Shown here: positions 497-58,200 of the stretch, in pieces
Layout: each line of letters opens with the position of its first letter
How positions within the stretch are numbered: the first letter of the stretch is position 1
NCBI GenBank assembly: GCA_002269645.1
Contig: NIVC01002796.1
Location: forward strand, 31-64,030
Direction of reading: 5' to 3'
DNA from: Macrostomum lignano
Taxonomy: Eukaryota
Length of the DNA stretch: 64,000 bases
Notes under the pieces: generated by a model
The model's input: only the letters and a program-made list of their open reading frames with translations
Database searches by the model: none
Told to the model about the DNA's origin: nothing
Translations under genes and position numbers: made by a program

Positions 497-3400
497 GCCT
501 CATGATACGCGCCGCCCTCTCAAAATCCCAGTGGTCTGCTGCGGCCAGAAGACGGTCTGGTCCTACCGCACCCACGGCCTCAGCCGGCTGGGCCAGACGG
601 ACCTGCTGCTCCTCCTTGAGCACATCGCCATCGACAACGCCGCCCCAGCCGATCCGGTCGCTCTATTCGCTGGCGTCCTCAAGAAGGCCAAGGAGGGCAG
701 CACGGTGGGCGACATGGACCACACGGTATTCCAGGCCAGCGAGCGCGGATTCCTCGGAAGCCAGTACACCGGCGGGGTGCTGTACTTCTTGGAGAGCGGC
801 CAGTGCTTTCACGGCCTCGTACACCCGGCCGACTTTGGCAGCCTGCTGGCCTGCCGGCTGGTGCACAGGCGGGAGCTGCCCTACCTGCTGCACTCGCCAA
901 CACGGCTGCTGCTGAGGCTGGGCGCCGAGGACGGCGTGTATCCGTGCGGCCTCATCAGCAACCGCTACCGGCCGCCAGTGTTCTACGAACCGGCCCGATC
1001 GGTCATGTCCATGTTCAGGGTAAGGAGATTCGCTAGTCTTAGACAGCTAAACTCGCATATCCCCATCTGCACAATGTCTCCCTTTCTGCACTTGAAAATG
1101 CGCTAGACTCCCCTATTGGCGCTAGACTCCCCTATTGGCGCTAGACTCCCCTATTGGCGCTAGACTCCCCTATTGGCGCTAGACTCCCCTATTGGCGCTA
1201 GACTCCCCTATTGGCGCTAGACTCCCCTATTGGCGCTAGACTCCCCTATTGGCGCTAGACTCCCCTATTGGCGCTAGACTCCCCTATTGGCGCTAGACTC
1301 CCCTATTGGCGCTAGACTCCCCTATTGGCGCTAGACTCCCCTATTGGCGCTAGACTCCCCTATTGGCGCTAGACTCCCCTATTGGCGCTAGACTCCCCTA
1401 TTGGCGCTAGACTCCCCTATTGGCGCTAGACTCCCCTATTGGCGCTAGACTCCCCTATTGGCGCTAGACTCCCCTATTGGCGCTAGACTCCCCTATTGGC
1501 GCTAGACTCCCCTATTGGCGCTAGACTCCCCTATTGGCGCTAGACTCCCCTATTGGCGCTAGACTCCCCTATTGGCGCTAGACTCCCCTATTGGCGCTAG
1601 ACTCCCCTATTGGCGCTAGACTCCCCTATTGGCGCTAGACTCCCCTATTGGCGCTAGACTCCCCTATTGGCGCTAGACTCCCCTATTGGCGCTAGACTCC
1701 CCTATTGGCGCTAGACTCCCCTATTGGCGCTAGACTCCCCTATTGGCGCTAGACTCCATCTTATTAGCGCTAGACTTCCCTATTAGCGCTAGACTTCCCT
1801 ATTAGCGCTAGACTTCCCTATTAGCGCTAGACTCCATCTTATTAGCGCTAGACTCTCCTATTAGCGCTGGTTCTGCGCGAACCTTCAGGAGGCCGTCCCG
1901 CACCTGAGCGAAGGCCTGGTGCCGCGGCTGCGCGACTGCAACCTGACGCTGGAAAGCAACGGCATCGTCGTGGTGTCGATCTCTGGCCGGCGCCAGGCCG
2001 ACCTGGCCAGCCTGCTCAGCGTGTACGCTCCGGACACCGATGGAGTGCTGGCGCTGGCTGGCGAGCTCTGCCAGTCAGCCGATGCGCACCTGGTTGCCAG
2101 GGAGTCGCCTGGAGGCGAATTTGAAACCGTCCTGTTCTCCGCTGCAGGACGACCGCAGATCTGGCCGGCTGGGGGACTGCCGGCCACGGCTGGGGTGTCT
2201 GTTGGGGTGAGTGCTGTCCGGATGGAGGACAGAGGCTGGGGTTGATGCTGAGGGTGAGTGCTGTCCGAATAGAGGACTGAGGCTGGGGTGTCTGCAGGGG
2301 GTGAGTGCTGTCCGGATGGAGGACTGAGGCTGGGGTGTCTGCAGGGGATGAGTGCTGTCCGGATAGAGGACTGAGGCTAGGGTGTCTGCAGGGGGTGAGT
2401 GCTGTCCGGGTGGGTGTTATTGCAAGAAAAGTACATTTATTCGTGATGTCTCCCCACCAAAAAATGTAGCGCCTGCAGTCACTGGCCTCGGCTTTATAGC
2501 ACTGTCCACTCGACTGGGGCAGCGGATCAACAGGGCTGCTTGGCGGCCATCGTGGAAGACGGTCTTGGCGTTATCTGCAGCCGGCAGGACATGTGGAGCC
2601 TACTGCAGGTGAGAACTTGCAAGTCCTGCAGCATCATCACTCCTGCATCATCATCACTCCTGCACCATCATCACTCCTGCAGCATCATAACTCCTGCAGC
2701 ATCATCACTCCTGCAGCATCATCACTCCTGCACCATCATCACTCCTGCACCATCATCACTCCTGCACCATCATCACTCCTGCACCTGTATCCTGCATCGC
2801 TCGATCATCAAACCAAAAATCTCGCAGAGCCTGAACGAAGCCGAAGACTTTGTGCTGCCACTCGACTGGCTGTTCTTGCACGACCGACGCGAACCAATGC
2901 GAAGTTCCAGTATCCGGTTTGTATGGCGCCACCTGCCTGGGGAGTGAACGGCGTCCTGGCTCCAACATTGTAGTGCTAATTGGGAACTATAACTGCATCT
3001 AAATTATTTTGACTACCACCTGTCACCTTACCAATTGTTAGCTCTGCCTTGTCAAATCGTTACAAAAGACGTTTGATCTACTCGTCTACTCGTCTACTCA
3101 ATTTCTAACCCTCTACTGTCAGTAGTAGATCATGCTTAAAACGACTCCTTATATTTTATGTCTGGTGTTGGCAAATTTACAAGAATATGTAACAGCAGAC
3201 GGACAGAGATAGTTTTTAACCAACCAGCCAGTCATAATAATCATGCGCTTCAGTGTGTAAAATCTAGAAAGCTTACCGTTTTCTGGACGCTTTGCCTCGG
3301 ACCTGCTAATTTTCTGGTAGCTTATAATTGGCTTTAAAAATTTGCCTCATCTTCAAATTTCATTTTCAAGTCAGGTATAAGGAGAAGGTTGAAATGAGTA

Positions 3401-3714
3401 ACGACGCGAACATTTGCACTTTAACAGGGAAGAAAAACCCCTCGCGTCTTTAGTCTCACAACTGCCTAAGCCAAGCTACCCCATTGCATTGCCAACTCAA
3501 CCAAGCAGGCGAGAGGCTGCGGGTGACCCAGTCAGAACTATTGAAAGAGATCGGCTACGGTTCTGGCATTACAGATGCTACGGCAACCACCGGGTGGAAG
3601 TCAACAACTAGTGCGGCACTGGGGTTGTGGGTTGATGGAAGCATGTCGTGCCTGAGAAGCTGGGGGCTGAGGTGTCTTCCATCCCTACCAAGAAATTCTC
3701 AGAGAAATTGTTAG
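497..3714 (+). CDS. ZFYVE9: SARA/endofin (ZFYVE9/ZFYVE16)-like protein, C-terminal DUF3480 region; 5' part lies outside the window
   Basis: Exons: 497-1019; 1889-~2200 (donor unclear); ~2470-2610; 2828-2943; probably 3428-3714. RLLLRLGAEDGVYPCGLISNRYRPPVF matches SARA [37 protein letters not shown] matches FNEKADSHLV, VTGLGF...IVEDG matches VTGASF...IVEDG, and SLNEAEDF matches ALREMKDF. Two apparent frameshifts (~2517, ~3480). The last exon is less certain. Confidence 0.8.
1099..1870. repeat. 19-bp minisatellite (GGCGCTAGACTCCCCTATT)n in SARA intron
   Basis: More than 30 perfect units, then degenerate units up to the acceptor. Confidence 0.97.
2187..2410. repeat. ~47-bp tandem repeat (GGCTGGGGTGTCTGCAGGGGGTGAGTGCTGTCCGGATGGAGGACTGA)
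   Basis: 4-5 imperfect units, each containing GTGAGT. Confidence 0.85.
2622..2790. repeat. ~17-bp tandem repeat (CTCCTGCAGCATCATCA)
   Basis: About 9 variant units directly after the donor at 2611. Confidence 0.9.
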
Positions 3715-3905
3715 GGTTGAAGAGGCTATATGAAAGATAGCCTAGCAGAGAGCCAGCTTGAGTTTTGCTCTCTCAAAGCTGAATTGTGCTCAAGAGCCAA
3801 AAAAACAATACGTATATAGCTCGTGGAAAACTGACAGGCCAGAAGTCAAGAAGCCAAGCCTTGTATTCATATAACTTTTGCCCTCTAGCTCAAACTCAGT
3901 CTGAA

Positions 3906-6063
3906 ATGCTCCAACGAAGCCAGCTTACTGAGCTGGCAGCCCTGTGGACTGTGTGCGCCATCATCCTGTCGGCAGGCAGGCTGACAGACGGGCAGGTTCT
4001 CAACTCCGCGGTGCTGTGCAAGGCGGACCGATGCTACAACATCAGCATTCTTGGAAACGGTGACTACTTGAGTAGCTATTGCGCCAGCTTCGGGATGCAG
4101 AAGCTCGACCAGATATCGTTTGAACTGTTCACTGCTAACATAGCAGCACTGACTAGGTGAGCCCTACTGAATCTGTTCACTGCTAACATAGCAGCTCTGA
4201 CTAGGTGAGCCCTACTGAATCTGTTCACTGCTAACATAGCAGCTCTGACTAGGTGAGCCCTACTGAATCTGTTCACTGCTAACATAGCAGCACTGACTAG
4301 GTGAGCCCTACTGAATCTGTTCACTGCTAACATAGCAGCACTGACTAGGTGAGCCCTACTGAATCTGTTCACTGCTAACATAGCAGCTCTGACTAGGTGA
4401 GCCCTACTGAATCTGTTCACTGCTAACATAGCAGCTCTGACTAGGTGAGCCCTACTGAATCTGTTCACTGCTAACATAGCAGCACTGACTAGGTGAGCCC
4501 TACTGAATCTGTTCACTGCTAACATAGCAGCTCTGACTAGGTGAGCCCTACTGAATCTGTAGCACTGACTAGACGACCCCAACCAGCCTTAACCTGCAGA
4601 ATAGAGGGACTGGCGTGAAGCATTGCGGACCGTAGCTTGTAGGCCTAGTCCATCTCATAATTCACTGGAATGCTAAACTGGAATGCCTCGGATGACGGAT
4701 GACGGGCAGCCAGAAAGCTCATAGTTGGAAATAGAAAATCAATAATTATCGTGAGTTTTCTGTTGACGATTCGTCCCTACGAGAAACGACGATCGTAAAA
4801 AGAGCTCGTACGAGCTACATCCTTACCTGACTTTCCAGTGGCGTCAGTGAGACGACGTACTGGACTGGCGTCCACAGGGCCGCTCGCACCAGCCCGGCAG
4901 ACAGGGTGTTCGCCTGGCGCAGCCAGACCAGCCAGCTGTACGTCTCCAGCACCGACGTGAGCCCGTCTAGCGAAGTCTTCACCAGCACGGAGGAAGACCC
5001 AACAGTGGGTGTGATCACGGACACCACAATCAACGTGACTAATTGGAACTCGATAAAAGTAGATAACAGCGGCTACGCCATCTGCATGTGCGTGTGTCCG
5101 ATATCCAACCTGACCTGCTGCCCAGCACCGGCTTCTGGCTACACCTGCGCCAACTCGAGCGACGGTCGCTCCTTTTGCTTTCGACGTGGCGACTCCAAAA
5201 AGAAGTACTGGGAGGCGCCGACCATGTGCAGCCTGGCCAGCGGAGAGACGCTGATTGATCTGACTGAGACCGCTGCTCGAGTGGCCTTTCATGCGTACGT
5301 TTCACTGTACACAGTCTCTGGTTCTTTTTCCCTTTATGGATAATAATAATTAGAAAAACCCCTTTCCAGTGTTTTCAACACCTTCAAGGCCGGTTGTCAT
5401 GACACCTGCCTGATGGCTTTCGAGGAGCTGCCGTACAGGTTCAACGATAGCTATGGGCCGAAACTGCTTGCGGAAGGTTTCCCTTTGAAGGAGGGATACT
5501 TGAAGCAGAAAACAGACGATGCCAGGTACGGAATTACCATTGAAAAAGACTCTGGCACAGGAGGAATCAGGTACCTGGAAGAGAGGGACACCAGCGGGGG
5601 TTCTGGCCAGTTTGTATGCACTGCCACACCTGTAGAAACGACTACAACTACTACAACTACTACGCCGACTACCACAACTACATCAACTACCACAACAACT
5701 ACGCCGACTACCACAACAACTGCATCGACTACCACAACAACTGCATCGACTACCACAACAACTACTACGCCGACTACCACAACAACTACACCGACTACCA
5801 CAACTACTACGCCGACTACCACTACAATTGCGCCGAGTACTACAACCACACCTACTATCCCCACCCCGATAGCATCGACTGCTACCAAGCAGGCTTCAGC
5901 TGTCACTCCGCTGTCAGAGGAGCAAGTCGTGGCCATTAACATTCAAAACTACGAGAATTCAAAAGAGAAGGCGACATTCTATTTGGTCCCTGTTGTGTTT
6001 CTGGTTCTGGCAGTGCTGATTACTTATTACTTTGGGCGACTTGCTTATCAAATGGGCGTCTAA
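3906..6063 (+). CDS. Type I membrane protein, copy 1: signal peptide, two C-type-lectin-like domains, Thr-rich mucin stalk, TM helix, ~8-aa tail (466 aa)
   Basis: Exons 3906-4156, 4839-5294, 5370-6063, joined by phase-2 GT-AG introns with the frame continuous. CTLD-like hallmarks: CY...YC..GM..L, YWTG..R...FAW, YAIC; CP..GY.C...CF...KKYWEA..MC...G..L, QFVC. TM segment FYLVPVVFLVLAVLITYYF. Confidence 0.8.
4125..4572 (+). repeat. 48-bp tandem array made of the exon-1 end plus the splice donor of CTLD-mucin copy 1
   Basis: Unit CTGTTCACTGCTAACATAGCAGC(A/T)CTGACTAG|GTGAGCCCTACTGAAT; 9 AG|GTGAG sites at 48-bp spacing from 4157 to 4541. Confidence 0.97.
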
Positions 6064-13554: not shown

Positions 13555-15177
13555 AATCCAAGGACTACTCAAGGACTACTCAATGACTACTCAAGGACTG
13601 ACTACTCAAGGACTGACTACTCAAGGACTGACTACTCAAGGACTGACTACTCAAGGACTGACTACTCAAGGACTGACTACTCAAGGACTACTCAAGGACT
13701 ACTCAAGGACTGACTACTCAAGGACTGACTACTCAAGGACTACTCAAGGACTACTCAAGGACTACTCAATGACTACTCAAGGACTACTCAAGGACTACTC
13801 AAGGACTACTCAATGACTACTCAAGGACTACTCAAGGACTACTCAATGACTACTCAAGGACTACTCAATGACTACTCAAGGACTGACTACTCAAGGACTG
13901 ACTACTCAAGGACTACTCAAGGACTACTCAAGGACTACTCAAGGACTACTCAATGACTACTCAAGAACTACTCAAGGACTACTCAATGACTACTCAAGGA
14001 CTACTCAATGAATACTCAAGGACTACTCAAGGACTACTCAATGACTACTCAAGGACTACTCAATGACTACTCAGGGACTGACTACTCAAGGACTGACTAC
14101 TCAAGGACTGACTACTCAAGGAATACTCAAGGACTACTCAAGGACTACTCCTCAAGAACTACTCAAGGACTACTCAATGACTACTCAAGGACTACTCAAT
14201 GAATACTCAAGGACTACTCAAGGACTACTCAATGACTACTCAAGGACTACTCAAGGACTACTCAAGGACTGACTACTCAAGGACTGACTACTCAAGGACT
14301 ACTCAAGGACTACTCAATGACTACTCAATGACTACTCAAGGACTACTCAAGGACTGACTACTCAAGGACTGACTACTCAAGGACTGACTACTCAAGGACT
14401 GACTACTCAAGGACTACTCAAGGACTGACTACTCAAGGACTGACTACTCAAGGACTACTCAAGGACTACTCAAGGACTACTCAAGGACTACTCAAGGACT
14501 ACTCAAGGACTACTCAAGGACTACTCAATGACTACTCAATGACTACTCAATGACTACTCAATGACTACTCAAGGACTGACTACTCAAGGACTACTCAAGG
14601 ACTACTCAAGGACTACTCAAGGACTACTCAATGACTACTCAATGACTACTCAATGACTACTCAAGGACTGACTACTCAAGGACTACTCAAGGACTACTCA
14701 AGGACTACTCAAGGACTACTCAAGGACTACTCAAGGACTACTCAAGGACTACTCAAGGACTACTCAAGGACTACTCAAGGACTACTCAAGGACTACTCAA
14801 GGACTACTCAAGGACTACTCAAGGACTACTCAAGGACTACTCAAGGACTACTCAAGGACTACTCAATGACTACTCAATGACTACTCAAGGACTGACTACT
14901 CAAGGACTACTCAAGGACTACTCAAGGACTACTCAAGGACTACTCAATGACTACTCAATGACTACTCAAGGACTGACTACTCAAGGACTACTCAAGGACT
15001 ACTCAAGGACTACTCAAGGACTACTCAAGGACTACTCAAGGACTACTCAAGGACTACTCAAGGACTACTCAAGGACTACTCAATGACTACTCAATGACTA
15101 CTCAAGGACTGACTACTCAAGGACTACTCAAGGACTACTCAAGGACTACTCAAGGAATACTCAAGGACTACTCGAGT
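13555..15177. repeat. 1.6-kb satellite of interspersed 11-bp (GACTACTCAAG / GACTACTCAAT) and 15-bp (GACTGACTACTCAAG) units
   Basis: Seen directly. Confidence 0.98.
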
Positions 15178-15678: not shown

Positions 15679-18600
15679 TTAATCGTCCCTGCCGCCGGTG
15701 CCTCGCAGCTCCTCAATCCTGGCGCCCTCCAGTGCAGCGCGCAGCTCCTCCAGTCGGGTGAGCAGTGCGAAGCCCTCCTGGCTGAACTCATCCTCCTCCA
15801 GCTGCCAGCGGGTGCAGCTCAGCCGGTTGCGCAGTTTTCTCAGTGTGACCGACTGGTAGTACAGGTAGAACAGGTGCACAAAGTTCCTGGTATTCTGCGC
15901 CAGCACGTCTAGCATTGTGCGGCGTCGAGGCGCCAGACCGATGAGGCGCCGTAGCAGAGAGACCAGCAGCCAGGCCGCCAGGTTGCGGCCCTCCAACAGC
16001 AGGTTGAGCGGTGCCGGCAGCGGGGAGCGCTTGGTGAACTCCCGGCTGAGGTCGTAGCGCTCAAATAGCCAGAGCGACTTGGACTCGGAGTCGACCATAT
16101 CGACGGTCTTGCTGAACATGGCCACGATGACGTTCAGGAGCAGCACCTGCACGATCACGATGTACGCTGCCATGAGACCGTACGGCACCAGCACATTGCC
16201 AGGGAAGCCGACGCACTTCTCTGCAATCATTGACTCCGTTGCCAGCTGGGTGGACACGTTGGCGCTTGTTGGAGCGTCGCACTCTTTCTTCAGGTCGTCC
16301 AGGCCGTACTCGCCTGCTCAGTAGCAATAAGTTCGAGACAGTAGCGATAGGTTGAGCATCATAAATTCATAAGAGATAGCCCACTGAGGGGGGGGGGGTA
16401 GTGCGTCGGCTAAAGTACATTGGTTCGATTCAGCGCGTGACCGCATTAATTTGGGGCTCAATGTACGTACACTTGGTGAGTCACGATGAGAAATTCAAGT
16501 GCCGCTGTGCTCCCTGTGTGAGCGTGTGTATGAGTTTATGAGTCTGCTTTTAGTTATTCATGCTTATATACTTGTAAATTGTCTCTTGACGTGCTAGGGG
16601 GCTGTAGCCTAGTGGTCAGAGCGTCGGACTCACGACTTGAAGGTCGGGGGTTCGATTCTCAACTCACTCGGAATAATTTATATCCATGAGCAAGACACTT
16701 AACTCTGCATTGCTTCAGTTCACCCAGCTGTAAAATGGGTGCCAGCATTAGCTGGGGTAATTGAGGGTGTGTGTGGCGACCCCCCAGTCCTTGGACTGAA
16801 CAGCCGTACGCAGCCTTCAGATGCGCCGCGCAATAGCTGCGGCTGAGCTGTCGGTTGCGCATCTCTTTCATCTGATTTACTCACCAACAATAGTATAAAA
16901 GGTCCTGTGAAACATTTCCACAAGAATCTCCGCTGTTGGAATCTCGTTGATGCGGCCCTGGCTGTAGAACTTTGCATTTGGCCACAGGAGGGCGTGGAAA
17001 GTGGTTCCGAATCCCACCATGATCACCACAAGGATGTACAGAAACGGGATGAAGTCCTTTCTGACGATGAGAGACAGCATCTTCAGCTTGACGCCGACAG
17101 ACTCGAGCACCACTGAGATGTAGAGGATGCGAATCCAGAAGATCAGCGTGGTGATGACTATCAGTACGTAGCTGACGTCGCCCCAGCCTTTGCCGTGCTC
17201 GCTGAGCATGCCGCCGAGCACCAGCAGATGTTGCGAATCCATCTGTCTGGCTGCAAAGGCCAGGAAGCCGCAGAGGATTGCAACCAGGTCCATGGCATTC
17301 CAGCCGTCAGTCAGGTAGACCGCCAGTGTCTCCTGGCGCCAAGCGGAGACCACCTCGCGCAGCTCCTCGACTAGAACGCCAAGCAGGGTCAGGTAGCAGA
17401 ACACCTCTGTGGGGCTGGCGTCTCCCTGAAAATGAAAAAGGGCACTCCGCGTTGTAAGGGTTGGGAGACTGCCGATTAGCGCCAGTGATCTTTAATCTCT
17501 TCCTGTTTAAACTTTAGATCCTCCAAATTAATTAGTAAATATTTTGTATCCTTCGATTGACTGCATTTTTTGGACAGGGGTCTAAAGTCGGAGCTGGAGC
17601 TGAATTAACCTCGTATTTCAAAGCACAGCTTTGGCCACTTGCTCCGCCCTCCATTGTGTCCTCTCGCACTTTTTTATATTTTCTCCTCTCTGCTCTCCTC
17701 TCTCTTCTCTCTCCCCCATCTCCTCTCTGCTCTCTCTTCTCTCTCCCCCCATCTCCTCTCTGCTCTCTCTTCTCTCTCTCCCCCATCTCCTCTCTGCTCT
17801 CTCTTCTCTCTCCCCCATCTCCTCTCTGCTCTCTCTTCTCTCTCTCCCCCATCTCCTCTCTGCTCTCTCTTCTCTCTCTCTCCCATCTCCTCTCTGCTCT
17901 TCTCTCTCTCCCCGATCTTCTCTCTGCTCTCTCTTCTCTCTCTCCCCCATCTCCTCTCTGCTCTCTCTTCTCTCTCCCCCATCTCCTCTCTGCTCTCTCT
18001 TCTCTCTCCCCCATCTCCTCTCTGCTCTCTCTTCTCTCTCTCCCCCATCTCCTCTCTGCTCTCTCTTCTCTCTCTCCCCCATCTTCTCTCTGCTCTCTCT
18101 TCTCTCTCTCCCCCATCTCCTCTCTGCTCTCTCTTCTCTCTCCCCCATCTCCTCTCTGCTCTCTCTTCTCTCTCCCCCCTTCTTCTCTCTGCTCTCTCTT
18201 CTCTCTCCCCCATCTCCTCTCTGCTCTCTCTTCTCTCTCTCCCCCATCTCCTCTCTGCTCTCTCTTCTCTCTCTCCCCCATCTCCTCTCTGCTCTTCTCT
18301 CTCCCCCATCTCCTCTCTGCTCTCTCTTCTCTCTCTCCCCCATCTCCTCTCTGAACTTCTCTCTCTCCCCCATCTCCTCTCTGCTCTTCTCTCTCCCCCA
18401 TCTCCTCTCTGAACTTCTCTCTCTCCCCCATCTCCTCTCTGCTCTTCTCTCTCCCCCATCTCCTCTCTGCTCTCTCTTCTCTCTCCCCCCATCTCCTCTC
18501 TGCTCTCTCTTCTCTCTCTCTCCCATCTCCTCTCTGCTCTTCTCTCTCTCCCCGATCTTCTCTCTGCTCTCTCTTCTCTCTCTCCCCCATCTCCTCTCTG

Positions 18601-21600
18601 CTCTCTCTTCTCTCTCTCCCCCATCTCCTCTCTGCTCTTCTCTCTCTCCCCCATCTCCTCTCTGCTCTCTCTTCTCTCCCCCCATCTCCTCTCTGCTCTC
18701 TCTTCTCTCTCTCTCCCATCTCCTCTCTGCTCTTCTCTCTCCCCCCATCTCCTCTCTGCTCTCTCTTCTCTCTCTCCCCCATCTCCTCTCTGCTCTTCTC
18801 TCTCTCCCCGATCTTCTCTCTGCTCTCTCTTCTCTCTCTCCCCCATCTCCTCTCTGCTCTTCTCTCTCTCCCCCATCTTCTCTCTGCTCTTCTCTCTCTC
18901 CCCCATCTTCTCTCTGCTCTCTCTTCTCTCTCTCCCCATCTCCTCTCTGCTCTTCTCTCTCTCCCCCATCTTCTCTCTGCTCTCTCTTCTCTCTCTCTCC
19001 CATCTCCTCTCTGCTCTTCTCTCTCTCCCCCATCTCCTCTCTGCTCTTCTCTCTCTCCCCCATCTCCTCTCTGCTCTTCTCTCTCTTCTCTCTCTCCCCC
19101 ATCTCCTCTCTGCTCTGCTCTCTCTTCTCTCTCCCCCCACCTCTTCACTAATATTTTATCATCTCTCCTCGCTCCTCCCTTTCCCATCTCCTTTTTTCTG
19201 TCTCCTTCCTCTTATCTTTTGTTCGTCTTCCTTTCTTCCCTCCTCGTCTGCAGTACCAAATCTATAGAATTAACCATTTTTTATTAGAGGCAGGGTAGCT
19301 GTGTACTGGCGCACCCTGGCGCACTTTAAGTGGCATTGTCACACAACCGGCGAGAGGCATTGCTGTGTAGCAGTTCTTTGTAGCAGCTTGGTTATCCATT
19401 TATCGTTGTACTTTTTCTCTTCGTTGTTTACCCCTTCTGTGGACCTCAACCACAGACAATGAAAGTTAAACAATACTGTACGCTGCGTATTAAGTTACAC
19501 CTCTAAGATTTATCAAGACAAAAAGTATACTCGCCCCTGAGCACAGTGAGCAGGCACACAAGCGCGCGGATACGTACGCAGTCATACGCACAGGCACACA
19601 CTCACACAGGAGTGTACAGCGCTCCCAGCGTTATTTATCGTTAGGCATGTACACTTTACTGTGCATTGGGGGTCGGCCCTCAAGACAGGCCGAGATTCCA
19701 ATTTAGCCCCCAAATGAATATGACTGCACTTGGAATCGAGCCTGGGCCGCTGGAACATGGGAGCGCCGCGCTAGACTGCTGGACTGCGGCCCCTCCAATT
19801 AAATCAATTAAAATGTCCTGCAGCAATGAACTGGATATCCATCTGGCCCTGAAGGTATAAAAGATTGCCGATCCATGATTCTGGACGAGAAACAGTGCTG
19901 ATTTCCCACTTCCCAGTTTCATTCCTCATCGATTGCTCCCTTCCCAGAGCCGCTGGTCACCTGAAAGTCGTGCAGTATCACGTAGGACAGCAGGCCGATG
20001 AACACAAACGAGGCCGCCGCGTGCAAGCGAAACTTGACGCACGGCGTGTTGTAAAACAGCGCCAGCTCGCTGCCGAACTCGCTCGCTCGCTGCCACAGGC
20101 GGCGACTGCGCGCTTCCAGTTCAGAGTCCTGTCGTCGGCGTCGGCGTCTGGCCACCTGGAAATCCGAGGCGAGCAGACGGAACGTCTCCGGACAGTTGCC
20201 CGGATGTTCGGTTGGTCCGGAATCGTTGAGCACCGAGTCGAGGAAGGCGCGCGTGCCAGGACCGCGGAACCGGCGCAGCAGGCCGGGCAGGAAGAGCAGC
20301 AGCGGTGGAACGAACCCGGCCGCAATCACCAGCTCGCGCAGGGCAGGCTTGCGGAAGTTGAAAAAGTCCCCATACCAGTTCTTCTCCGTTGCCAGTTCAA
20401 CAATGTCCAGCTTGATGAAACTGCCCGCCCCGCCTCGAGCAGACAGGTCAAGAATCGTGTAGTTAGCGTAGTTGGGCAGAGGCATACTCACGTAGCTGAT
20501 GGTGAGGCAGTTGCCGGGTGAATCGTCAACCTCCTTCACCTGCTTGATCACTTTGACGGCCATCGCCTCGCAGATGTCGGCGATGCGACCGGCCCGGTCA
20601 GCGAACACGTCCTCGATGTCGCGTCGACGTGCCAGTGAGCGGAGCAGCGTTGCGGCGAGCAAGGCTAGCGGCACCAGGTCGAACTCCTCCTGCTGCAGCA
20701 AGATCGGCACCAGGCCCGGCCGGCCGCTCAGGATCGCCCACAGCACCAGCGACTGGGCGGGGTCTCGGAGCGGCCGCTTCTGGCACCAGTCGTCGCCGCC
20801 GCGTCGCTCTCCAAAGTCGAACACCATCTGGCGGCTGGCGAACTGCCAGTAAGTGGTGAGCTCGGCCAGCAGCTTGTTGAGCCTTGCAAACGAGATCGAA
20901 GTGCCGCCGTCGATGCAGCACCGCTGCTGGAGCAGCTCGCGCACGCCTGCCTTCTGCTTGCGCAACGTCTTGGCATACAATTTGTCGATGGCAACCTCCA
21001 GTTGGCGGGAGAGCGCTCTCCAGAGGTGCCGATGTTCAACCAGCCGCTTCAGCAGGCGCGTGTTCTCGGCAAACAGCACCAGCTGGCACAGCTGCCAGGT
21101 GATCCGACTCAGCAGGCCGCTGGACTCGAGGCTGCAGCTCAATCCGGCCTGGAAGGCGGCGATCAGAGCATCAATGAGCTGCTTGGCGTCCACGGTGCGA
21201 CGGGAGGCAGCCAGCTCAAGCCTGGACAGCTGCCATTGCCGCTGCTTCACCGCCTCTTCATCTTCTTCGGCTTCCAAGCCCTCCGGGTCCAAGTCCTTTG
21301 CTTCAGCTCTCTTTGACTGTCCATCAATGTCGCTGTCAATGAGCAGCAACTGGCGCACGAACTCGCGACCTTCAAAAGAGGCGAACACCCCGATTATGTC
21401 CTGGCCGTTATTGAACTGTCGAAGGCGGCGCATCAGGTGCCTGCCGAGGCAGTCGATGCCGGATGTGTCCGGGCCCTGCAGCAGCAAATCGACCGGCGTC
21501 TGGCCGCGACTATCAGCCAGAGAGAAGTCGGCACCGTGACAGAGCAGCTGGCCAAGCAGCTCATGATTCTCACACGAGGCGGCAATATGCAGGCCAGTGC

Positions 21601-22108
21601 TGCCGCTGCTATTCCGACTGTTGACAATGGAAGGCTTTGCCCGCAACAGGAGGTCGGCGATGCGGCCACACTCGGCGTAGCAGGCCACGTGCAGCGCGTT
21701 GTCGCCGATGGCGTCGAGCTGAGTCGGATCGGCGCCGCACCGGAGCAGCTCGCGGGCGACGCCTTTGCTGCGCTCGCCCGCCGCTGCAGCCAGGTGGAGC
21801 GGCCGGTCGCCTGCCGAGTTTGGCCGGTCCGCATTGGCGCCGAACGTCAGCAGCAGCTCGGCGCACTCGGTCAGACCGGCAGCGGCGCACGCGTGCAGCG
21901 CCGAGTCTCCGCGGTCATCTGGCGCTTCAATGGCGCCAGCGCCGGCAATGTCAACCAACTGCAGCAGCACTTGGCGCAGCTTGTCGGGCTGGTTGTCTCG
22001 CACAGCGTCGTGCAGCTGCGCCGCCAGCTCGCCGCTGGGGTCGCTCGCGGCGGCCTCTTGGGAGCCGGCGGCGTTACTGGAGTCTCCAGACGGTGGCGAC
22101 TCAGACAT
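15679..22108 (-). CDS. TRPM-family-like cation channel with N-terminal ankyrin repeats (~1107 aa)
   Basis: Coding exons 22108-19961, 17425-16885, 16313-15679, with consistent phases 0 and 1. Ankyrin repeats: GDSALH, GDRPLH, GDNALH, GSTGLH. TRPM MHR4-like LVLWAILSGR...LVPLALLAATLLRSLA; pre-S1 FYNTPCVKF; S1-S6; pore TFYTIVGEYG; TRP helix LLNVIVAMFSKT...WLFERY...PLPAPLNLL. An acceptor at 22153 implies an upstream exon, probably UTR. Confidence 0.88.
16597..16865 (+). mobile_element. tRNA-derived SINE with CORE-like central domain, copy 1
   Basis: A box TAGCCTAGTGG and B box GGTTCGATTC. GAGCAAGACACTTAACTCTGC...CAGTTCACCCAGCTGTAAAATGGG resembles the MIR/CORE block. Near-identical to the copies at 57456 and 62526; the 3' end is shorter. 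Confidence 0.82.
17684..19145. repeat. CT-rich polypyrimidine minisatellite (~28-32-bp variable unit CTCTCTTCTCTCTCCCCCATCTCCTCTCTG)
   Basis: Seen directly; source of the spurious 250-550-aa ORFs. Confidence 0.97.
19533..19623 (-). mobile_element. Short dispersed element (GCTGTACAC..CTGTGTGAG.GTGTG...GCGCTTG...TGCTCAGG family)
   Basis: The reverse complement aligns by eye with 59706-59789, 42867-42945, 61735-61813 and 16504-16547. Confidence 0.6.
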
Positions 22109-22467
22109 TGCAGGCCTAGCTGAGGCGGGCAGCAGTGCGCCAACGGCTTTCGCTTGCAAAATAGAGAGAGAGAGAGAGACCAGGTAATCTTGAGTGTCAG
22201 TCTGCTGTCTGCCTGTATGCAGCGGAGAATTCAACCGGATCCGACGGCCGCTAATGCTGGTCCTCCCCCGAGGCCCTGCGAATCAAAAGCCAGGCTTCGT
22301 TAGGCACCGAAAAATCTCCCAGCTAAAAAATACCTGCACAAGTCCCTCTCTCACCTTTCCCTTGGTTGCTAACCTGGACCAGGTGGCACAAATGAACCTA
22401 TTGAACCTGCAAACTTTGGGATTGCCTTCCTCTGACTGAGCAGACATAGAAAGTTGAGTTATTCCTG

Positions 22468-22540: not shown

Positions 22541-23354
22541 AGCGGCAACTGAAGTTTTCCTATTTTAACAGCGTTTTTTCCTGAATACAGGTCCGCTTTG
22601 TGGCAGAATTGGGGTCGAATATTTGTTTTTTTCATTCTTTTCACTCCGATTTCGTTACTAACTGCGTTTAGTCTCGCAAAATCAGTTTAACAAACGAGAC
22701 AGAAAATTAGGGAAAATTTCCACTTGATAAGAATCAAGGCAAGAATCAAATTGATTGTCCCTTGCAAAATCTTTCAACTTCATGTTTTACTACCCTACTT
22801 ACAACGGGGAAATCCGATGAGTAGTAAAAATAGCGTTTTTCGTTATTATAGAATCTTGGAATTCCTTTTTATCACTCTGCTTTTCTGTGATTTATATTTC
22901 CGCGTTCTTTGCCAAATGCTTACTGTTAGTAGAAATATATGGCTCTTTCGTATGAATTATGCGATAAAAATTAGAAGGAAGCAAAATCGGCTGACTCAGC
23001 ACGCACAAGACAGGAATTCTCTGCTGAGCCAGCGCATTGTACGGAGATGACGACACTCGCATAAATCACTGGGCCAATCAGTCACTGCTGCACTGGCTCT
23101 CGACAAGAAGTGAGGTCATGCCCAGGCACCCTGGCCAGCAGCAGTCATCGCCTTGACGAATCCCCTCTCGATCGTGATTCATACCTTGAGTCATGGTATG
23201 TCTTATAGATATTCTGTACGCTATGTTGGATATGTTTAAGTTGTCCACAAGTATATGCAGAGCGTTTGAAAATTAAAGTTTACAGATACTACAAAGGCAT
23301 GTATATCTATAAATCTGAAATATACATACATCCATACATACATAAATAGATCGA

Positions 23355-23923
<569 letters not shown>

Positions 23924-26312: not shown

Positions 26313-28325
26313 TCACATCCAGCCAGAGAAGGCGGCTGAGTTCGGTGCTGGCGACTCGCCAAGTTGCTCGTTGCTTCTGACCTTCTTCAGCGAGGCCAGC
26401 TGCTCGGCTGTTGGCCAGTCAGCGGTCGCGCCGGCGGCTCCGGCGGGGGTGATGGGGCTGACGGGCGTGTCGGCGGAGTAGCGGCGCTGCTCGGCGAGGC
26501 CGCCGAAGAAAAGGGCGCTGTTCCACAGGCGCTTCGGCCGCTCCTGCTCCGGCCAGAGCCGGCGGGCGTCCTTCAGGGTCTGCTGCTGCTGGGGCTCGTT
26601 TAGCAGTGACATCTGGGCGATCCCAATGCAGGCGTCAGCTCCGACATCGTCGCTGCTAGCAGCGGCGGCGGGTCCGGCAGCCGGGGTGACGCTGACAGTC
26701 GGGGCGGCCGACTCAGCTTTGGTCTGGCGCACCTGATGAAAATCGGCCACCAGTTTGAGGGCCTCGACGGAGCGGGGCAAGCTGGGCTCGAGCCACAGGC
26801 CTGGGCAGCGCATGGCAACGTACTCGGAGATGAGCTGCTTGGCAAACTGGACCCGTTCCTTGGTGCCGCAGATGGTGAAGCAGGTGCGCAGGCCGGGCTG
26901 CTTCTCCTGCTTGCGCGGCGTGGCGATGTGCGTGTCTGAGAGCTGCTGCACCCAGCGGATGGTCTGGCCAGAGGCGCCCACAATGAGGCCGACCTTGTCC
27001 TGCTCAACATACAGTCGCTCCTCCACTCTAGTGGGTTCAGTGCGAGTCTGACGTTCCTGCTGCACCCGGGTAAAGTGCTCACTCATCTGCTGCAGAATTC
27101 GGATCGCCTGCAAACAATTGATTGTGGGCTATTTGTTGAATGACTTAAGCACAATTTAGTGGTTCTTGTATTTTTGGCAATGTGCCAAGTTTTATATGCT
27201 CAATATGCATTAGTTGGAAAATTAAAAATTAAGCAACAGTGACTCACCTCAGCAACTTTATCTGGCACTCCAGTGACTTCAAAGATAGGCAGCTCATCTC
27301 TTGTTGGTGTCTTGACCCAAACCTTCAAGTGTTCACGGATCTGCTTGATGCGGAGGCCTGGAATAAGTAAAAAATAAGTTAAAATTAGCTAAATAAAAAA
27401 ATAAATGAACCAGTAATTAGAAAGAAAATAAGTTTTAAATATTAAAATTCAAAATAGGCCTATTCTAATCTAAAAAAACTTATATAAAATATACTTAAAT
27501 AAAAGAAGCTTATTTTAAATTTAAAGATTACAAATCAAGACAATATGCTAAATAAATTACTAAATAAGAAATTTTCAAACTAAAATATTTGGAAGCAACA
27601 ATTAATTCTCAAAGAGGAATTTTTTACACTTTACCTACATTAATTGAAAATTAATAAAAAACAAAATTATTTAGATTAGATGATATGCCATTTCTCATGA
27701 TGATTGATGTTAAGAAAAATATACAAACACACTTACCATTCTTGCCAACAATTTCAGCCACATGATCAGATGATGGAACTTGAATGCGCTCAGTAATTGT
27801 TATCTGTCGCTTGCCCTGAGCAATCGAAGCTTGCATTATTAGTCTTTGGAACAAATCGCGGGACCTATTCTCAAAGGTGGCCTGTCGCAGGTGGTTGTCA
27901 AAATCGGCACTGGCTGTCATTTGTTCAATGGCAGAAGTTCCAGCAGCTGATGAAGTCGCTGACTGGGTAGCAGAACTTGACAAATGATCCAAACTTTGAA
28001 GACTAAAATTTGCATCACCAAATGCTTCTGTACCTTCTGTTCTTGTCGCAAGTCCACAGCCAAGAATCGGCCTCCATGACGCACTGTCGCTCAATTCCGA
28101 TCCACGAATACCGCTAGCTTGAGTAGTCTTCTGGTTTGCAAGCAAATTTAGCAGGGACTCTGGGTCCAACTCTCCCATCTTCGGTAGTTCGACGTGTTCG
28201 AGAGTGGGAAGAACACGAGAAAGAAAATCAGACAGAGAGCTTTCTTCCGTTTTCGGGTTTCTATCCACAACAGAGTCGCTTTTAAAGTCACGACGTGATG
28301 AGTACTCGACGTCAACGTTCGACAT
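26313..28325 (-). CDS. mex3: MEX-3 family RNA-binding protein (2 KH domains, no RING; 497 aa)
   Basis: Exons 28325-27737, 27357-27248, 27107-26313 with consistent phases. IQVPSSDHVAEIVGKNGLRIKQIREHLKVWVKTPTRDELPIFEVTG matches MEX3 [46 protein letters not shown]. KH2 reads VGLIVGASGQTIRWVQQLSDTHIATP. Confidence 0.92.
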
Positions 28326-31120: not shown

Positions 31121-31681
31121 AATACAGTTTGGGGCCGCATTCAAAGTTTAGACTAAAGACAGGGACCACTAATACATTTAGAAAACTTTCATTTTCGGAA
31201 CTTGCAATTTACCATCGAATGGAAGAGGTAAGAATTTCGTAAAATTTGACGATTGCAACGAATGAAGTGAAATGCGAGCGTAAACAAAGTTTTATTATTT
31301 CCGCTCCAGCTGCGAGGTATACAAAAGCTGCAATCATAACTTAATAATTTACACTAAAAGTTCACTGCATGTATATAATGGCTGGGAATACCTAAACGTA
31401 TTCGCATATAAGGCGCTTAGCCAGTGCACATTCAAGCAAAAATTTCTATTCTTGGCCAAACCCCCAGTTGCCGGAATTCTTGCCACCCTAAGCACACAAG
31501 CAGCCAGTCAGAGCCTACGCTTGCTTTTAGCCTATGGCCTTCTATCTATAGCCTGTGTCACACAGCTCTTTTATTCGGCCAAAATAGCAAGAAAAGCCTG
31601 TCGAGCATGCATTAAATTTTGACGCTCTCTCATTCTCTAAATCCTCGTCAGGCATTTCAATCATCGCAAATAATCGACAGG

Positions 31682-38867
<7,186 letters not shown>

Positions 38868-55200: not shown

Positions 55201-58200
55201 TCACCAATAGCTGGTTGTGATGCCCTCTCTGGTCCACTAAAGTCACCAATAGCTGGTTGTGATGCCCTCTCTGGTCCACTAAAGTCACCAATAGCTGGTT
55301 GCGATGCCCTCTCTGGTCCACTAAAGTCACCAATAGCTGGTTGCGATGCCCTCTCTGGTTCACTAAAGTCACCAATAGCTGGTTGTGATGCCCTCTCTGG
55401 TTACTAAAGTCACCAATAGCTGGTTGTGATGCCCTCTCTGGTTTACTAAAGTCACCAATAGCTGGTTGTGATGCCCTCTCTGGTTTACTAAAGTCACCAA
55501 TAGCTGGTTGCGATGCCCTCTCTGGTTCACTAAAGTCACCAATAGCTGGTTGTGATGCCCTCTCTGGTTACTAAAGTCACCAATAGCTGGTTGTGATGCC
55601 CTCTCTGGTTACTAAAGTCACCAATAGCTGGTTGCGATGCCCTCTCTGGTTACTAATGTCACCAATAGCTGGTTGCGATGCCCTCTCTGGTTACTAAAGT
55701 CACCAATAACTGGTTGTGATGCCCTCTCTGGTTACTAAAGTCACCAATAACTGGTTGTGATGCCCTCTCTGGTTACTAATGTCACCAACAGCTGTTGCGA
55801 CGCCCTCTCCGGGTCACCTAAAGTCAACTACAGCGGTTGTGGTGCCCTACCAGCTTGTCACTTGGTAAATTTGTCAGACCAAACCGAAATCCATTTCATG
55901 CTATCCATTCACATTAGCTCCGTCTCACCTGCAAAGCCTTGATCCCTAGAGTCATGGTAGCTCTGAGGTTCTCAGCCTGAGATTTGGCTTCTGACTGGCG
56001 CGCCTTTTGTTGCGAGATCAGCAGACGGCGCTCTTTGATGTTGGCCGTGGACATCTGCAGGCGATTTCGCACCGCGTAAAAGAACACTTCTTCCTTCGTG
56101 TGTAGAAAGTAGTTCAGCATGCTCTCCTGTTGGAATAACAAAATTAGGTTAATTGCTTTAAGTAGTAAGGTGTGTGTTTTTTATACTGTTTTACGAAATA
56201 TGCGTGACATACCTGAACCCTCTCATTAGCGTTAAACAGCATCATGCCAAGCAGTGAAAGCACCTCCTTGGCTACTAGGCTGCTGGTGGAAGCCAGATGC
56301 GGCAAAGCGTGCTTCACTAGTTCGAACGAGTTGAGCGTTGTTTGAATGTCCGATATGTTGCGAAGGCCCCTGAAAATCGATTTATTTTGCGTTGTAAAAA
56401 TTCTAACAAAGTTTTTTCTTGAATGATGAATTGTCGTCATCTAGATCTCTAGAGAGATTTATTTAAAAATGAGTAGAAAAAATAAGACAAAAGTTTTGCC
56501 CCGTGTGAGGATCGAACTCACGGCCTTCAGATTATGAGACTGACGCGCTACCTACTGCGCTAACGAGGCAACTGGCACCATATTGCCCGAGAAAGGCATT
56601 TCACTAATACTCCTATATAAGGTCTCTATACTCACTTTTTCACTCGAAACTCCGTGGTTCGAACCTCCCAGTCAGCCGGGAGTTTTCTCTCCTCGTTGTG
56701 CATGAAGGCGCGCAGAATCTGCAGGATGCGAACCGTCAGGCGCTCTTGCTCGCGTCGGAGCTTCGTCTCCGTGCTCGTAGTTGGCACGTGGGTGGTGCCG
56801 CTGGTTGTCGCACAGATTCTTCGGGTTGAATAATTAAATTCCTAGATCAGCTAGGGATTCGTTTAATGAATCTTGTTTAACCGCCCTACCTGAGTCCGTT
56901 GACCAGCAGCGCGCCCAGTTTGTACCGCTGCTCAGGCTTCCGGCTGCCCATGCCGATGAGGCAGCGCACGTGACTCTGAAACTCCTCGTCGAGGGCAGCG
57001 CCTCGTCGCCTCCGATTGTGGTGTACTCTGCGTGCGACAGTCAGACAGTAGTGCAAATGTACGATTAAGCATCCTTACTGTAGTGAGGCATAAAAGTTGT
57101 AAAAGTACTGACTGCACTACCTCTATTGGAGTTGACCTTCAATTGCGCTTTCACCGTGTTGTGACCGCCCCACAGCAGGCTGAGATTAACAGCCAACGAT
57201 TTTAGCTTAGTGTTGAGAATGATCTCCTGTTCATAATACTCTTTGTTTCCCTGAAAGTGTTTAGATTCAAACAAAATAGCTACACTGAGCAATGGCAACG
57301 TGAATTTTTCGTCAAGTACTAAGCGCGCTGTTCGTACCGATTTCATCTGGGACACTGTGTCCTGCAGTTTAGTGCCTTTGCCGATGTTCTCCACCACTGG
57401 CTCCATGATCTGCGTGATTGCAACAATTTGGATAGCGGTTTTGGTGCAAGCTACAGGGGGTGTAGCCTAGTGGTTAGAGCGTCGGACTCACGACTTGAAG
57501 GTCGGGGGTTCGATTCTCGACCCCACTGGAACAATTTGTGTCCTTGAGCAAGACACTTAACTCTGCACTGCTTCAGTTCACCCAGCTGTAAAATGGGTGC
57601 CAGCATTAGCTGGGGGTAATTGAGGCTGTGTGGCGACCCCCCCCCCCCCAAGTCCTTGGACTGAACAGCCGTACGCAGCCTTCAGATGCGCCGCGCAATA
57701 GCTGCGGCTGAGCTGTCGGTTGCAAATCTGACCATTTGGGCAGGTGTAATCAATTATTACTATGAAGGGCAGTCTGTAAGGCCCAGCATCAGGTGTCTAT
57801 AGTACGTGTCTACCCGTATGTCCGTATGTGCCTGCATCAGCATCCACATGCCTGCTCAGGCGAGCTTATGTGCGCGAAGACTTCAATGGTGTGCTCAGTC
57901 ACCCGACTCGTAAAGCCATCATCGAAAGCAAAACAGATTAGAAAACTTACCGAGGGGGATGTGAGCTGCGCTTCACGATGCAGCTGAGGCAGCTGACCAT
58001 CTGCGTCAGCACCTTCGGCTCCACAACAATGGAAGCCAGCTGGCAGCAGAACTCCACCGCGCCTGTAGTCATGCGGTCGAATATCTCGCGCTCGTTTTGA
58101 AAGTCTTTGTCCTCATCGACTACGTAGAACTTCTGCGCGAACGCCTGCAGGAAAGGAAACACCGCGTCGAACACGTAGTGCAGCGACGAGTGCCCGCGGT

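Follow-up and report, generated by a model that had tools for sequence, protein, structure and literature searches.

We analysed a stretch of 64,000 nt from the genome of the free-living flatworm Macrostomum lignano (GenBank assembly GCA_002269645.1, contig NIVC01002796.1, positions 31 to 64,030 of the forward strand), which is called the window hereafter and is numbered from its first letter. The window carries, at 15679..22108 on the minus strand, a gene for a TRP channel of 1107 amino acids with ankyrin repeats at its N-terminus and a TRPM-type channel region. This gene is very probably intact and a member of a flatworm-specific clade of ankyrin-bearing "TRPM-like" channels typified by TRPM_MCLZ. 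The gene and its parts are arranged as follows.

15679..22108, minus strand: whole gene, with ATG at 22108, TAA at 15679-15681, three coding exons and 1107 amino acids, defined by open reading frames (ORFs) and canonical splice sites.
19961..22108, minus strand: exon 1, residues 1-716, 2148 nt uninterrupted, with the N-terminus, ankyrin array, linker, MHR4, pre-S1 and S1.
21419..22039, minus strand: ankyrin array, residues 24-230, six helix-pair repeats, four of them scoring as canonical Pfam Ank.
20798..21418, minus strand: helical linker, residues 231-437, all-helical in the AlphaFold2 model.
20285..20797, minus strand: MHR4-like block, residues 438-608, with LVLWAILSGR...LALLAATLLRSLA and the NWYGDF segment.
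19967..20155, minus strand: pre-S1 helix and S1, residues 652-714, with FYNTPCVKF and the pocket residues H696 and S700.
17426..19960, minus strand: intron 1, 2535 nt, donor CAG/GTGACC, pyrimidine-rich acceptor TTTCAG/GG.
16885..17425, minus strand: exon 2, residues 717-896 and base 1 of codon 897, with S2, S3, S4, S5 and the pore helix.
16314..16884, minus strand: intron 2, 571 nt, donor G/GTGAGT, acceptor GAGCAG/GC.
15679..16313, minus strand: exon 3, residues 897-1107 and stop, with the filter GEYG, pore loop, S6, TRP helix and C-terminal helices.
16114-16200, minus strand: S6, within exon 3.
16030-16104, minus strand: TRP helix (residues 967-991), an AlphaFold2 helix with WLFERY at 16054-16071.
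15724-16005, minus strand: C-terminal helices of the AlphaFold2 model, in exon 3.

Exon 1 is enclosed in a 771-codon ORF (19919-22234) whose first ATG is at 22108, and ends at its donor between 19961 and 19960. The joined coding sequence has 3321 nt plus TAA and gives 1107 amino acids. In alignment and tblastn the gene model was collinear with the M. lignano proteins P0001 and P0002; the latter recovered all three coding blocks, and its residues 38-721 spanned 22015-19961 as a single tblastn alignment. The peptides at the two junctions, ILHDFQ/GDASPTEVFCY and FYTIVG/EYGLDD, were also collinear with M. lignano homologues (ILHDFQGTASSTEIFCY and FYTIVGEYGLDD), and the pore motif TIVGEYG straddles the exon 2/3 junction. 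Exon 2 contains the putative Ca2+-site residues E737, E740, N759 and D762 and the S4 residues R815 and Y818. We consider the gene model, read from the genomic sequence alone, to be sound.

Pfam models identified ankyrin repeats in four stretches between residues 32 and 208 (Ank_2 with E 1e-21, and Ank), a TRPM2-like domain (PF25508) at residues 443-565 and Ion_trans at residues 703-973. The PF25508 match scored 29.7 bits (cutoff 27) and covered profile positions 139-255, which is the second half of the profile. LSDAT/SLOG, NUDIX and alpha-kinase domains had no Pfam match in the 1107 residues even at E<=1, and TRPM_tetra had no match in the protein. The AlphaFold2 model, built from a 15-sequence family alignment, had a mean predicted local distance difference test (pLDDT) score of 76 and a predicted template modelling (pTM) score of 0.72. 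It showed six ankyrin-type helix pairs at residues 24-230 (pLDDT about 88-93), an all-helical course onward to residue ~630, six transmembrane (TM) helices with a pore helix, the TRP helix, and three C-terminal helices at 1030-1054, 1058-1072 and 1075-1093, seen only as predicted helices where the first-pass annotation had placed a short coiled coil.

Ankyrin array, linker and MHR4 kept their order residue by residue in 15 homologues, with invariant positions in every domain; in the ankyrin array H105, H140, A142, T171, L173, H174 and A176 were invariant across the 15 flatworm homologues. The block at residues 438-608 aligned with MHR4 at high confidence by hhalign, and the alignments with PDB entries of TRPM1/3/4 begin at residues 440-450. 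The pre-S1 and S1 helices of the model run from 652 to 687 and from 689 to 714, and P689, K692 and F693 were invariant in the family alignment, as were E736, E737, W758 and N759 further on.

The first-pass annotation of the window, which was made without database searches and gave no strand for the gene, had described much of this correctly. Its three exons, 1107 residues and coordinates 15679-22108 were confirmed by the ORFs and splice sites, and its single open coding exon of ~2.15 kb corresponds to the 2148 uninterrupted nt at 19961-22108. The "4 clear plus about 2 partial" ankyrin repeats that it counted agree with four Pfam Ank stretches and six AlphaFold2 helix pairs; all the motifs it quoted (LVLWAILSGR, LALLAATLLRSLA, FYNTPCVKF, TIVGEYG, WLFERY and PLPAP) were found; and the absence of NUDT9H and kinase domains held in the Pfam scan at E<=1.

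The linker between the ankyrin array and MHR4 was less clear. In the profile-profile comparison residues 311-434 were collinear, at moderate confidence, with the first half of the TRPM2-like domain of P0222, which is MHR3, and the C-terminal part of the linker (about residues 311-434) is probably a diverged MHR3. The linker alone (residues 215-445) gave no significant hhalign match (E 0.031, 1.6% probability), which speaks against this assignment. In the passage of PMC13143021 that cites Burroughs et al. 2015, MHR3/4 are said to contain diverged ankyrin repeats. We observed weak matches (E ~1e-3) of a consensus-ankyrin query in the MHR3 region of two ordinary TRPMs, P0100 (residues 378-453) and P0121 (residues 422-476), which fits that description.

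Canonical TRPM channels begin with MHR1/2, the SLOG region, and we looked for such a region in and upstream of the gene. The N-terminus of the predicted protein aligned with those of M. lignano orthologues, whose ankyrin repeats also start ~30 residues past the start. No upstream exon with SLOG was found at 22.2-26.3 kb, where no ORF of at least 50 amino acids had TRPM similarity and there were simple repeats only. A tblastn search of the 64-kb window with N-terminal segments of 900-1000 residues from four flatworm TRPMs gave no match; three of these four are shown to carry both ankyrin repeats and SLOG. When the N-terminal 700 positions of the family were compared with a profile of 57 TRPM N-termini, the alignment was significant (99.8% probability) and collinear and laid ankyrin on ankyrin, and the SLOG segment (P0222 residues 348-589) found no confident counterpart in the window family by hhalign. 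For these reasons "ankyrin in place of MHR1/2" can be taken as a fair description of the predicted protein.

The channel region belongs with TRPM. With the family profile (E 5e-86 to 3e-54, best nvTRPM2 6co7) as well as with the TM region of the window protein alone (E 7e-23 to 3e-10), each of the 60 best matches in the PDB was a TRPM, without any other channel among them. Foldseek against the PDB placed TRPM4, TRPM2, TRPM3, TRPM5, TRPM7 and TRPM8 at the top (E 1e-16 to 8e-15); NOMPC came only 16th, and its sequence match runs through its ankyrin region. Canonical TRPM proteins (TRPM1-8, nvTRPM2 and the choanoflagellate TRPM2 chanzyme) were the best match in sequence and structure for residues ~440-1010. 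They share with the window protein MHR4, the pre-S1 motif FYxxPxxKF, the Ca2+-site motifs EELRx in S2 and WNxxD in S3, the TRP box WxFxRY followed by a PxPPP-like motif (here PLPAP), and C-terminal helices, and the GE-type filter is as in srTRPM2. The window protein differs from them in that canonical ankyrin repeats replace the MHR1/2 SLOG and that MHR3 is at best strongly diverged.

TRPN/NOMPC, TRPA, TRPC and TRPV likewise have an N-terminal array of canonical ankyrin repeats followed by a six-TM TRP channel, but they do not have the MHR4/PF25508 block, and the TM/TRP region of the window protein is not closest to them. Another TRPM-like sister lineage, whose TRP domain is divergent, is TRPS (ced-11-like; Himmel et al. 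2020). According to PMC7306681 it has SLOG and Nudix domains but lacks ankyrin repeats, so that the window protein, with SLOG absent, Nudix absent and ankyrin repeats present, is opposite to TRPS as described on all three.

The closest relatives are three M. lignano proteins of the same architecture, P0001, P0002 and P0003, with 55, 49 and 47% identity over the full length; the collection contained no protein identical to that of the window. A word-indexed search with the ankyrin-free part, repeated with an 11-sequence family alignment, returned three Macrostomum proteins only. The exhaustive HMMER search of the ankyrin-free part against 1.84 billion representatives gave 883 hits. The best were M. 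lignano P0001 and P0050-P0055, with P0058 a little further down the ranking (31-60% identity); P0050-P0055 and P0058 are 31-42% identical to the window protein. Opisthorchis P0057 appeared among the top M. lignano ranks, Dicrocoelium P0062 and Schistocephalus P0067 lower down, and Fasciolopsis P0237 was found as a cluster member. Every named member of the clade among the best 150 of the 883 hits is a flatworm.

The full-length M. lignano representatives that were scanned carried Ank and PF25508 in 7/7 cases, Ion_trans in 6/7 (not P0058) and SLOG in 0/7, and two neodermatan members (P0220 and P0067) carried Ank and Ion_trans and no SLOG in Pfam. A consensus-ankyrin scan revealed N-terminal repeats in all remaining full-length members, including those of Opisthorchis, Dicrocoelium, Fasciolopsis and Schistocephalus; the members that lack ankyrin are N-terminally truncated models. 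The same SLOG-less architecture is present in at least three flatworm classes.

Two neighbour-joining trees were constructed, one of the TM core (161 sequences, 286 columns, 100 bootstrap replicates) and one of MHR4 plus TM (90 sequences, 467 columns, 200 bootstrap replicates). In both of them the clade with ankyrin repeats only, including the window gene, had 100% bootstrap support. Within it, a Macrostomum subclade, the group of the window protein with P0001, P0002 and P0003, and a subclade of trematodes and cestodes were each supported at 100%. In M. lignano this ankyrin-bearing, SLOG-less channel has expanded into some twelve divergent paralogue groups with identities below 50% (P0001/2, P0050-55, P0058, P0060, P0074, P0077, P0103, P0235 and P0236), while trematodes and cestodes have one gene, sometimes with a duplicated exon. 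We also noted P0061 (1072 residues, Ank and Ion_trans), a single uninterrupted ORF at 1298-4516 on the 6.8-kb Logan contig DRR639838_5415, which joined the subclade of trematodes and cestodes in the tree at 92% bootstrap.

The parasite members of the clade connect the window gene with a published channel. Smp_333650 is TRPM_MCLZ, the meclonazepam-activated schistosome channel (Park et al. 2023/24, PMC10788528), and its group was previously classified as TRPM7-like (PMC10788528). In the description by Sprague et al. 2024 (PMC11731825), TRPM_MCLZ "lacks the NH2-terminal MHR1/2 or SLOG domain", and ankyrin-like modules stand in its place. The group was set next to the other flatworm TRPMs by Rohr et al. 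2026 (PMC12861061), who proposed the name "TRPM-like" on account of its N-terminal ankyrin repeats.

We assign the neodermatan subclade to the TRPM_MCLZ orthologues because of its pocket spacing, its exon-3 duplication and its database names. The pocket pattern of the neodermatan proteins, H, H(+4), Y(+33), E(+4), R(+75), x(+3), has the spacing of H827, H831, Y864, E868, R943 and H946 in Schistosoma mansoni (Sm; numbers from PMC10788528), and the spacing was identical in the Fasciolopsis, Dicrocoelium, Opisthorchis and Schistocephalus proteins. In trematode TRPM_MCLZ, according to the published work on this channel, exon 3 encodes the whole channel domain, and in Opisthorchis and Clonorchis it is duplicated (3a/3b). 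In the Opisthorchis viverrini proteins P0057 and P0219 two channel domains follow each other in tandem, at residues ~850-1150 and 1510-1830. They match the duplicated exons 3a and 3b, whose use is probably mutually exclusive; in the database models the two exons have been read through into one fused protein. Two neodermatan members are named "TRPM7" by their source databases. P0068 of Schistosoma rodhaini was tried as a further orthologue and rejected; it has a NUDT9H-like C-terminus and no HxxxH motif in S1, and falls outside the clade.

TRPM_MCLZ and the window protein both have N-terminal ankyrin repeats together with TRPM-type MHR4, S1-S6 and TRP helix, and neither has MHR1/2-SLOG, NUDT9H or a kinase. 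In the voltage-sensor-like domain H827, E868, R943 and Y1117 of TRPM_MCLZ correspond to H696, E737, R815 and Y983 of the window protein with near-identical spacing, and both genes have three coding exons. There are also clear differences. The window protein is 21-22% identical to the neodermatan members over the full length, and its ankyrin region is shorter, so that S1 starts from ~residue 690 and not from about 820-860 as in the parasites. Its channel region is split over three exons (S1, S2 to pore helix, filter to C-terminus), whereas it lies entirely in exon 3 in trematodes, and exon 3 is not duplicated. At three pocket positions Sm H831, Y864 and H946 are replaced by S700, V733 and Y818. 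The window gene is part of the Macrostomum-type expansion with many paralogues, in contrast to the single-copy TRPM_MCLZ.

The window gene is therefore a further member, in a free-living flatworm, of a described clade and not a new TRP subtype, because the architecture is published and the gene forms one 100%-supported clade with the TRPM_MCLZ orthologues. The first-pass annotation had seen an ankyrin array where TRPM has MHR1/2, a fusion inside one exon that is not due to mis-splicing, and a TM/TRP region of TRPM type. These observations stand, the first by Pfam, tblastn and hhalign without SLOG, the second by the open frame and the same layout in many homologues, and the third by the 60 best PDB matches and the top Foldseek matches. 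Its conclusion that the gene represents a new TRP subtype does not, since the combination of ankyrin repeats, MHR4 and TM region is already catalogued in this clade as TRPM_MCLZ.

How the architecture arose can be discussed with the other flatworm TRPMs, which by score and by tree were the nearest relatives outside the clade (sister group at 47% and 57% bootstrap). Several of them, P0069 and P0222 of M. lignano and P0138 of Clonorchis, have ~3 ankyrin repeats before SLOG, the TRPM2-like domain and Ion_trans in Pfam. These proteins (P0069, P0222, P0138 and P0233 of Clonorchis/Opisthorchis) resemble the window protein in that ankyrin repeats at the N-terminus precede a TRPM core; they differ in keeping the LSDAT_euk SLOG and a full TRPM2-like domain (129-176 bits) and in their length of 1700-1900 residues. 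Judged from the protein sequences, the SLOG-less architecture was most likely derived within flatworm TRPMs, and this derived state is favoured because the named clade members are restricted to flatworms. The existence of flatworm relatives with ankyrin repeats, SLOG and TRPM core further suggests a stepwise origin, in which ankyrin repeats would have been added first and SLOG lost later, and not a one-step swap. The proteins with both may represent the evolutionary intermediate. A fuller scenario, a stepwise lineage spanning all flatworms that later gave rise to about a dozen paralogue groups in free-living macrostomids and was kept as one gene in the parasites, is possible but still rather doubtful to us.

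Alternatively, the clade might be an old ankyrin-bearing lineage, older than the gain of SLOG in the ancestor of TRPM and TRPS, and so a separate TRP family. Its long branch and its full separation from all other matches (100% bootstrap) would fit such ancestral retention, as would the weak attachment to flatworm TRPMs (47-57%) in a tree that has no outgroup root and the published placement of the group "next to", not inside, the other flatworm TRPMs under the name "TRPM-like" (PMC12861061). However, an old lineage would need loss everywhere else, given that the named members in the best 150 of 883 hits are all flatworm. The clade also has the TRPM-specific MHR4/PF25508, the Ca2+-site motif EELRx/WNxxD and the TRP box, and its closest non-clade matches are flatworm TRPMs, some of them with ankyrin repeats and SLOG. 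We therefore regard ancestral retention as improbable.

The idea of an uncatalogued domain shuffle, unique to this lineage and creating a novel TRP subtype gated by a new kind of input, could draw on TRP-evolution papers in which Platyhelminthes were unsampled and TRPM and TRPS are called ankyrin-free (PMC7306681, PMC13143021), and on public homologues labelled only "hypothetical protein", "ANK_REP_REGION domain-containing" or "TRPM7". It is very hard to maintain against the published architecture of TRPM_MCLZ and its orthologues, and against a design shared by at least three flatworm classes and by numerous M. lignano paralogues, all of which form one 100% clade with the window gene. Equally little credit can be given to an artefact or dead gene, that is, adjacent ankyrin and truncated TRPM genes joined by an open frame, or a decaying pseudogene: the locus is known from genomic sequence alone, tandem and dispersed repeats crowd its introns and flanks and some of the many M. 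lignano paralogues are fragmentary, but 716 codons are open across the ankyrin-MHR junction, none of the three exons is broken and their splice sites are canonical, the order ankyrin, linker, MHR4 is conserved in 15 homologues, P0061 is an uninterrupted 1072-codon ORF on an assembled contig, and the schistosome orthologue was cloned from complementary DNA and is functional.

Some points weigh against our assignment of the window gene to the TRPM_MCLZ clade and a derived origin within flatworm TRPMs. The derivation within flatworm TRPMs rests on a weak sister relationship (47-57%), and the trees are distance-based and unrooted and contain no TRPS, TRPC, TRPN or TRPA sequences. The link to Smp_333650 was made by way of orthologues from trematodes and cestodes and of residue numbers in the literature, not by direct alignment, and Smp_333650 is absent from the tree. 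Since intron positions differ from those of the trematode gene, "three exons" is not a shared structure; the exon layout describes members of the clade and does not define it. The gene at this locus is known from genomic sequence, and the channel function, Ca2+ dependence, permeability and drug insensitivity given below were read from conserved residues.

With regard to function, cloned Sm.TRPM_MCLZ produced Ca2+ signals and inward current in HEK293 cells (PMC10788528). By analogy with it, the window gene most likely encodes a tetrameric Ca2+-permeable cation channel. Four subunits would form a non-selective, Ca2+-permeable cation channel, as expected from TRPM structures and the cloned schistosome orthologue. 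S1-S4 would make a voltage-sensor-like domain, with a cytoplasmic cavity that could hold the ligand pocket and a TRPM-type Ca2+ site (E737, E740, N759, D762 and E988), and the TRP helix would couple this cavity to the S6 gate. The ankyrin array would sit in place of the nucleotide-binding SLOG layer and, as a default guess, would more likely serve in protein-protein or scaffolding interactions or in contacts between subunits. Gating by ADP-ribose or nucleotides would not be expected because SLOG and NUDT9H are missing.

The alignment with human and choanoflagellate TRPM2 matched VEELRE in S2 with CEEMRQ and LEELRQ, and WNAMD in S3 with WNKLD and WNRLD, respectively; REF in the TRP helix was aligned with EEY of TRPM2, and the filter VGEYG with YGELF of the choanoflagellate channel and FGQIP of human TRPM2. 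From the TRPM2/TRPM4 structure papers we take the ligands of activating Ca2+ in human TRPM2 to be E843, Q846, N869, D872 and E1073. Four of these five positions are identical in the window protein (E737, N759, D762 and E988), and Q is changed to E740. Co-activation by Ca2+ is plausible for the window channel because these positions are conserved, and the acidic residue in the filter, which divalent-permeable TRPMs also carry, would fit divalent permeability.

(S)-Meclonazepam activates the schistosome channel through a pocket in the voltage-sensor-like domain, where H831A, R943A and Y1117A nearly abolish the response and H946Y strongly lowers it (PMC10788528). The window channel is probably insensitive to the drug, since the equivalents of Sm H831 and H946 are S700 and Y818. 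According to the published TRPM_MCLZ work, the orthologues of Fasciola and Echinococcus are insensitive to meclonazepam, and therefore drug response does not define the clade.

In the searchable literature we found no paper on TRPM_MCLZ-like genes in free-living flatworms, on their expansion, or on an intermediate with ankyrin repeats and SLOG. Two large TRPM surveys do not include Platyhelminthes (PMC7306681, PMC13143021), and one of them calls TRPM and TRPS ankyrin-free; it is only the omission of this phylum that lets the rule of ankyrin-free TRPMs stand. The M. lignano paralogue expansion, the differing intron positions and the proteins with ankyrin repeats and SLOG appear to be undescribed, and they extend a known family modestly. 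Two TRPM drug targets have been validated in parasitic flatworms, and TRPM_MCLZ is one of them, which makes homologues from free-living species practically useful. Macrostomum can be made transgenic and offers a laboratory-tractable model for them, and the natural S, V and Y variants at three pocket positions are suited to comparative pharmacology. The free-living homologues also help to date the swap of SLOG for ankyrin repeats. If the stepwise reading is true, the flatworm channels would provide a natural series in which the role of the SLOG layer could be studied, together with non-parasite homologues of an anthelmintic target, and would contradict the general claim that TRPM and TRPS are ankyrin-free.

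Other features were observed in and around the gene, two of which are listed here.

17682-19137, within intron 1: 34-bp TC-rich tandem array, ~45 copies (Tandem Repeats Finder), filling most of the intron.
26313-28325, minus strand: exon of a KH-domain protein (KH_1, E 3e-10), the next minus-strand gene upstream of the channel gene.

The 34-bp array yields spurious ORFs of 250-550 codons on both strands ("GEREEQRGDG…" and "SLLSLLSPP…"), which are repeat artefacts. A 57-nt tRNA-like sequence (GAATCGAACCCCCGACC…CTAGGCTACAG) occurs in intron 2 (16602-16658) and again at 57460-57516, both on the minus strand and with 2 mismatches between them; by chance no second copy would be expected in the window. 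ARAGORN, whose scan stopped short of the second copy, did not call the intron-2 copy a tRNA, Rfam had no match for the 57-nt sequence, and the Rfam and tRNA scans of the gene region were empty. The repeat is probably a fragment of a tRNA-derived short interspersed nuclear element. Two further arrays flank the gene: 137 copies of the 11-mer CAAGGACTACT ~500 bp downstream of the stop codon (13559-15173), and (ATAG)x147 ~1.2 kb upstream of the start codon (23334-23923). On the plus strand, at about 31600-37100, there is a multi-exon Ser/Thr kinase gene (Pkinase, E 2e-31) whose motif looks NLK/MAPK-like.

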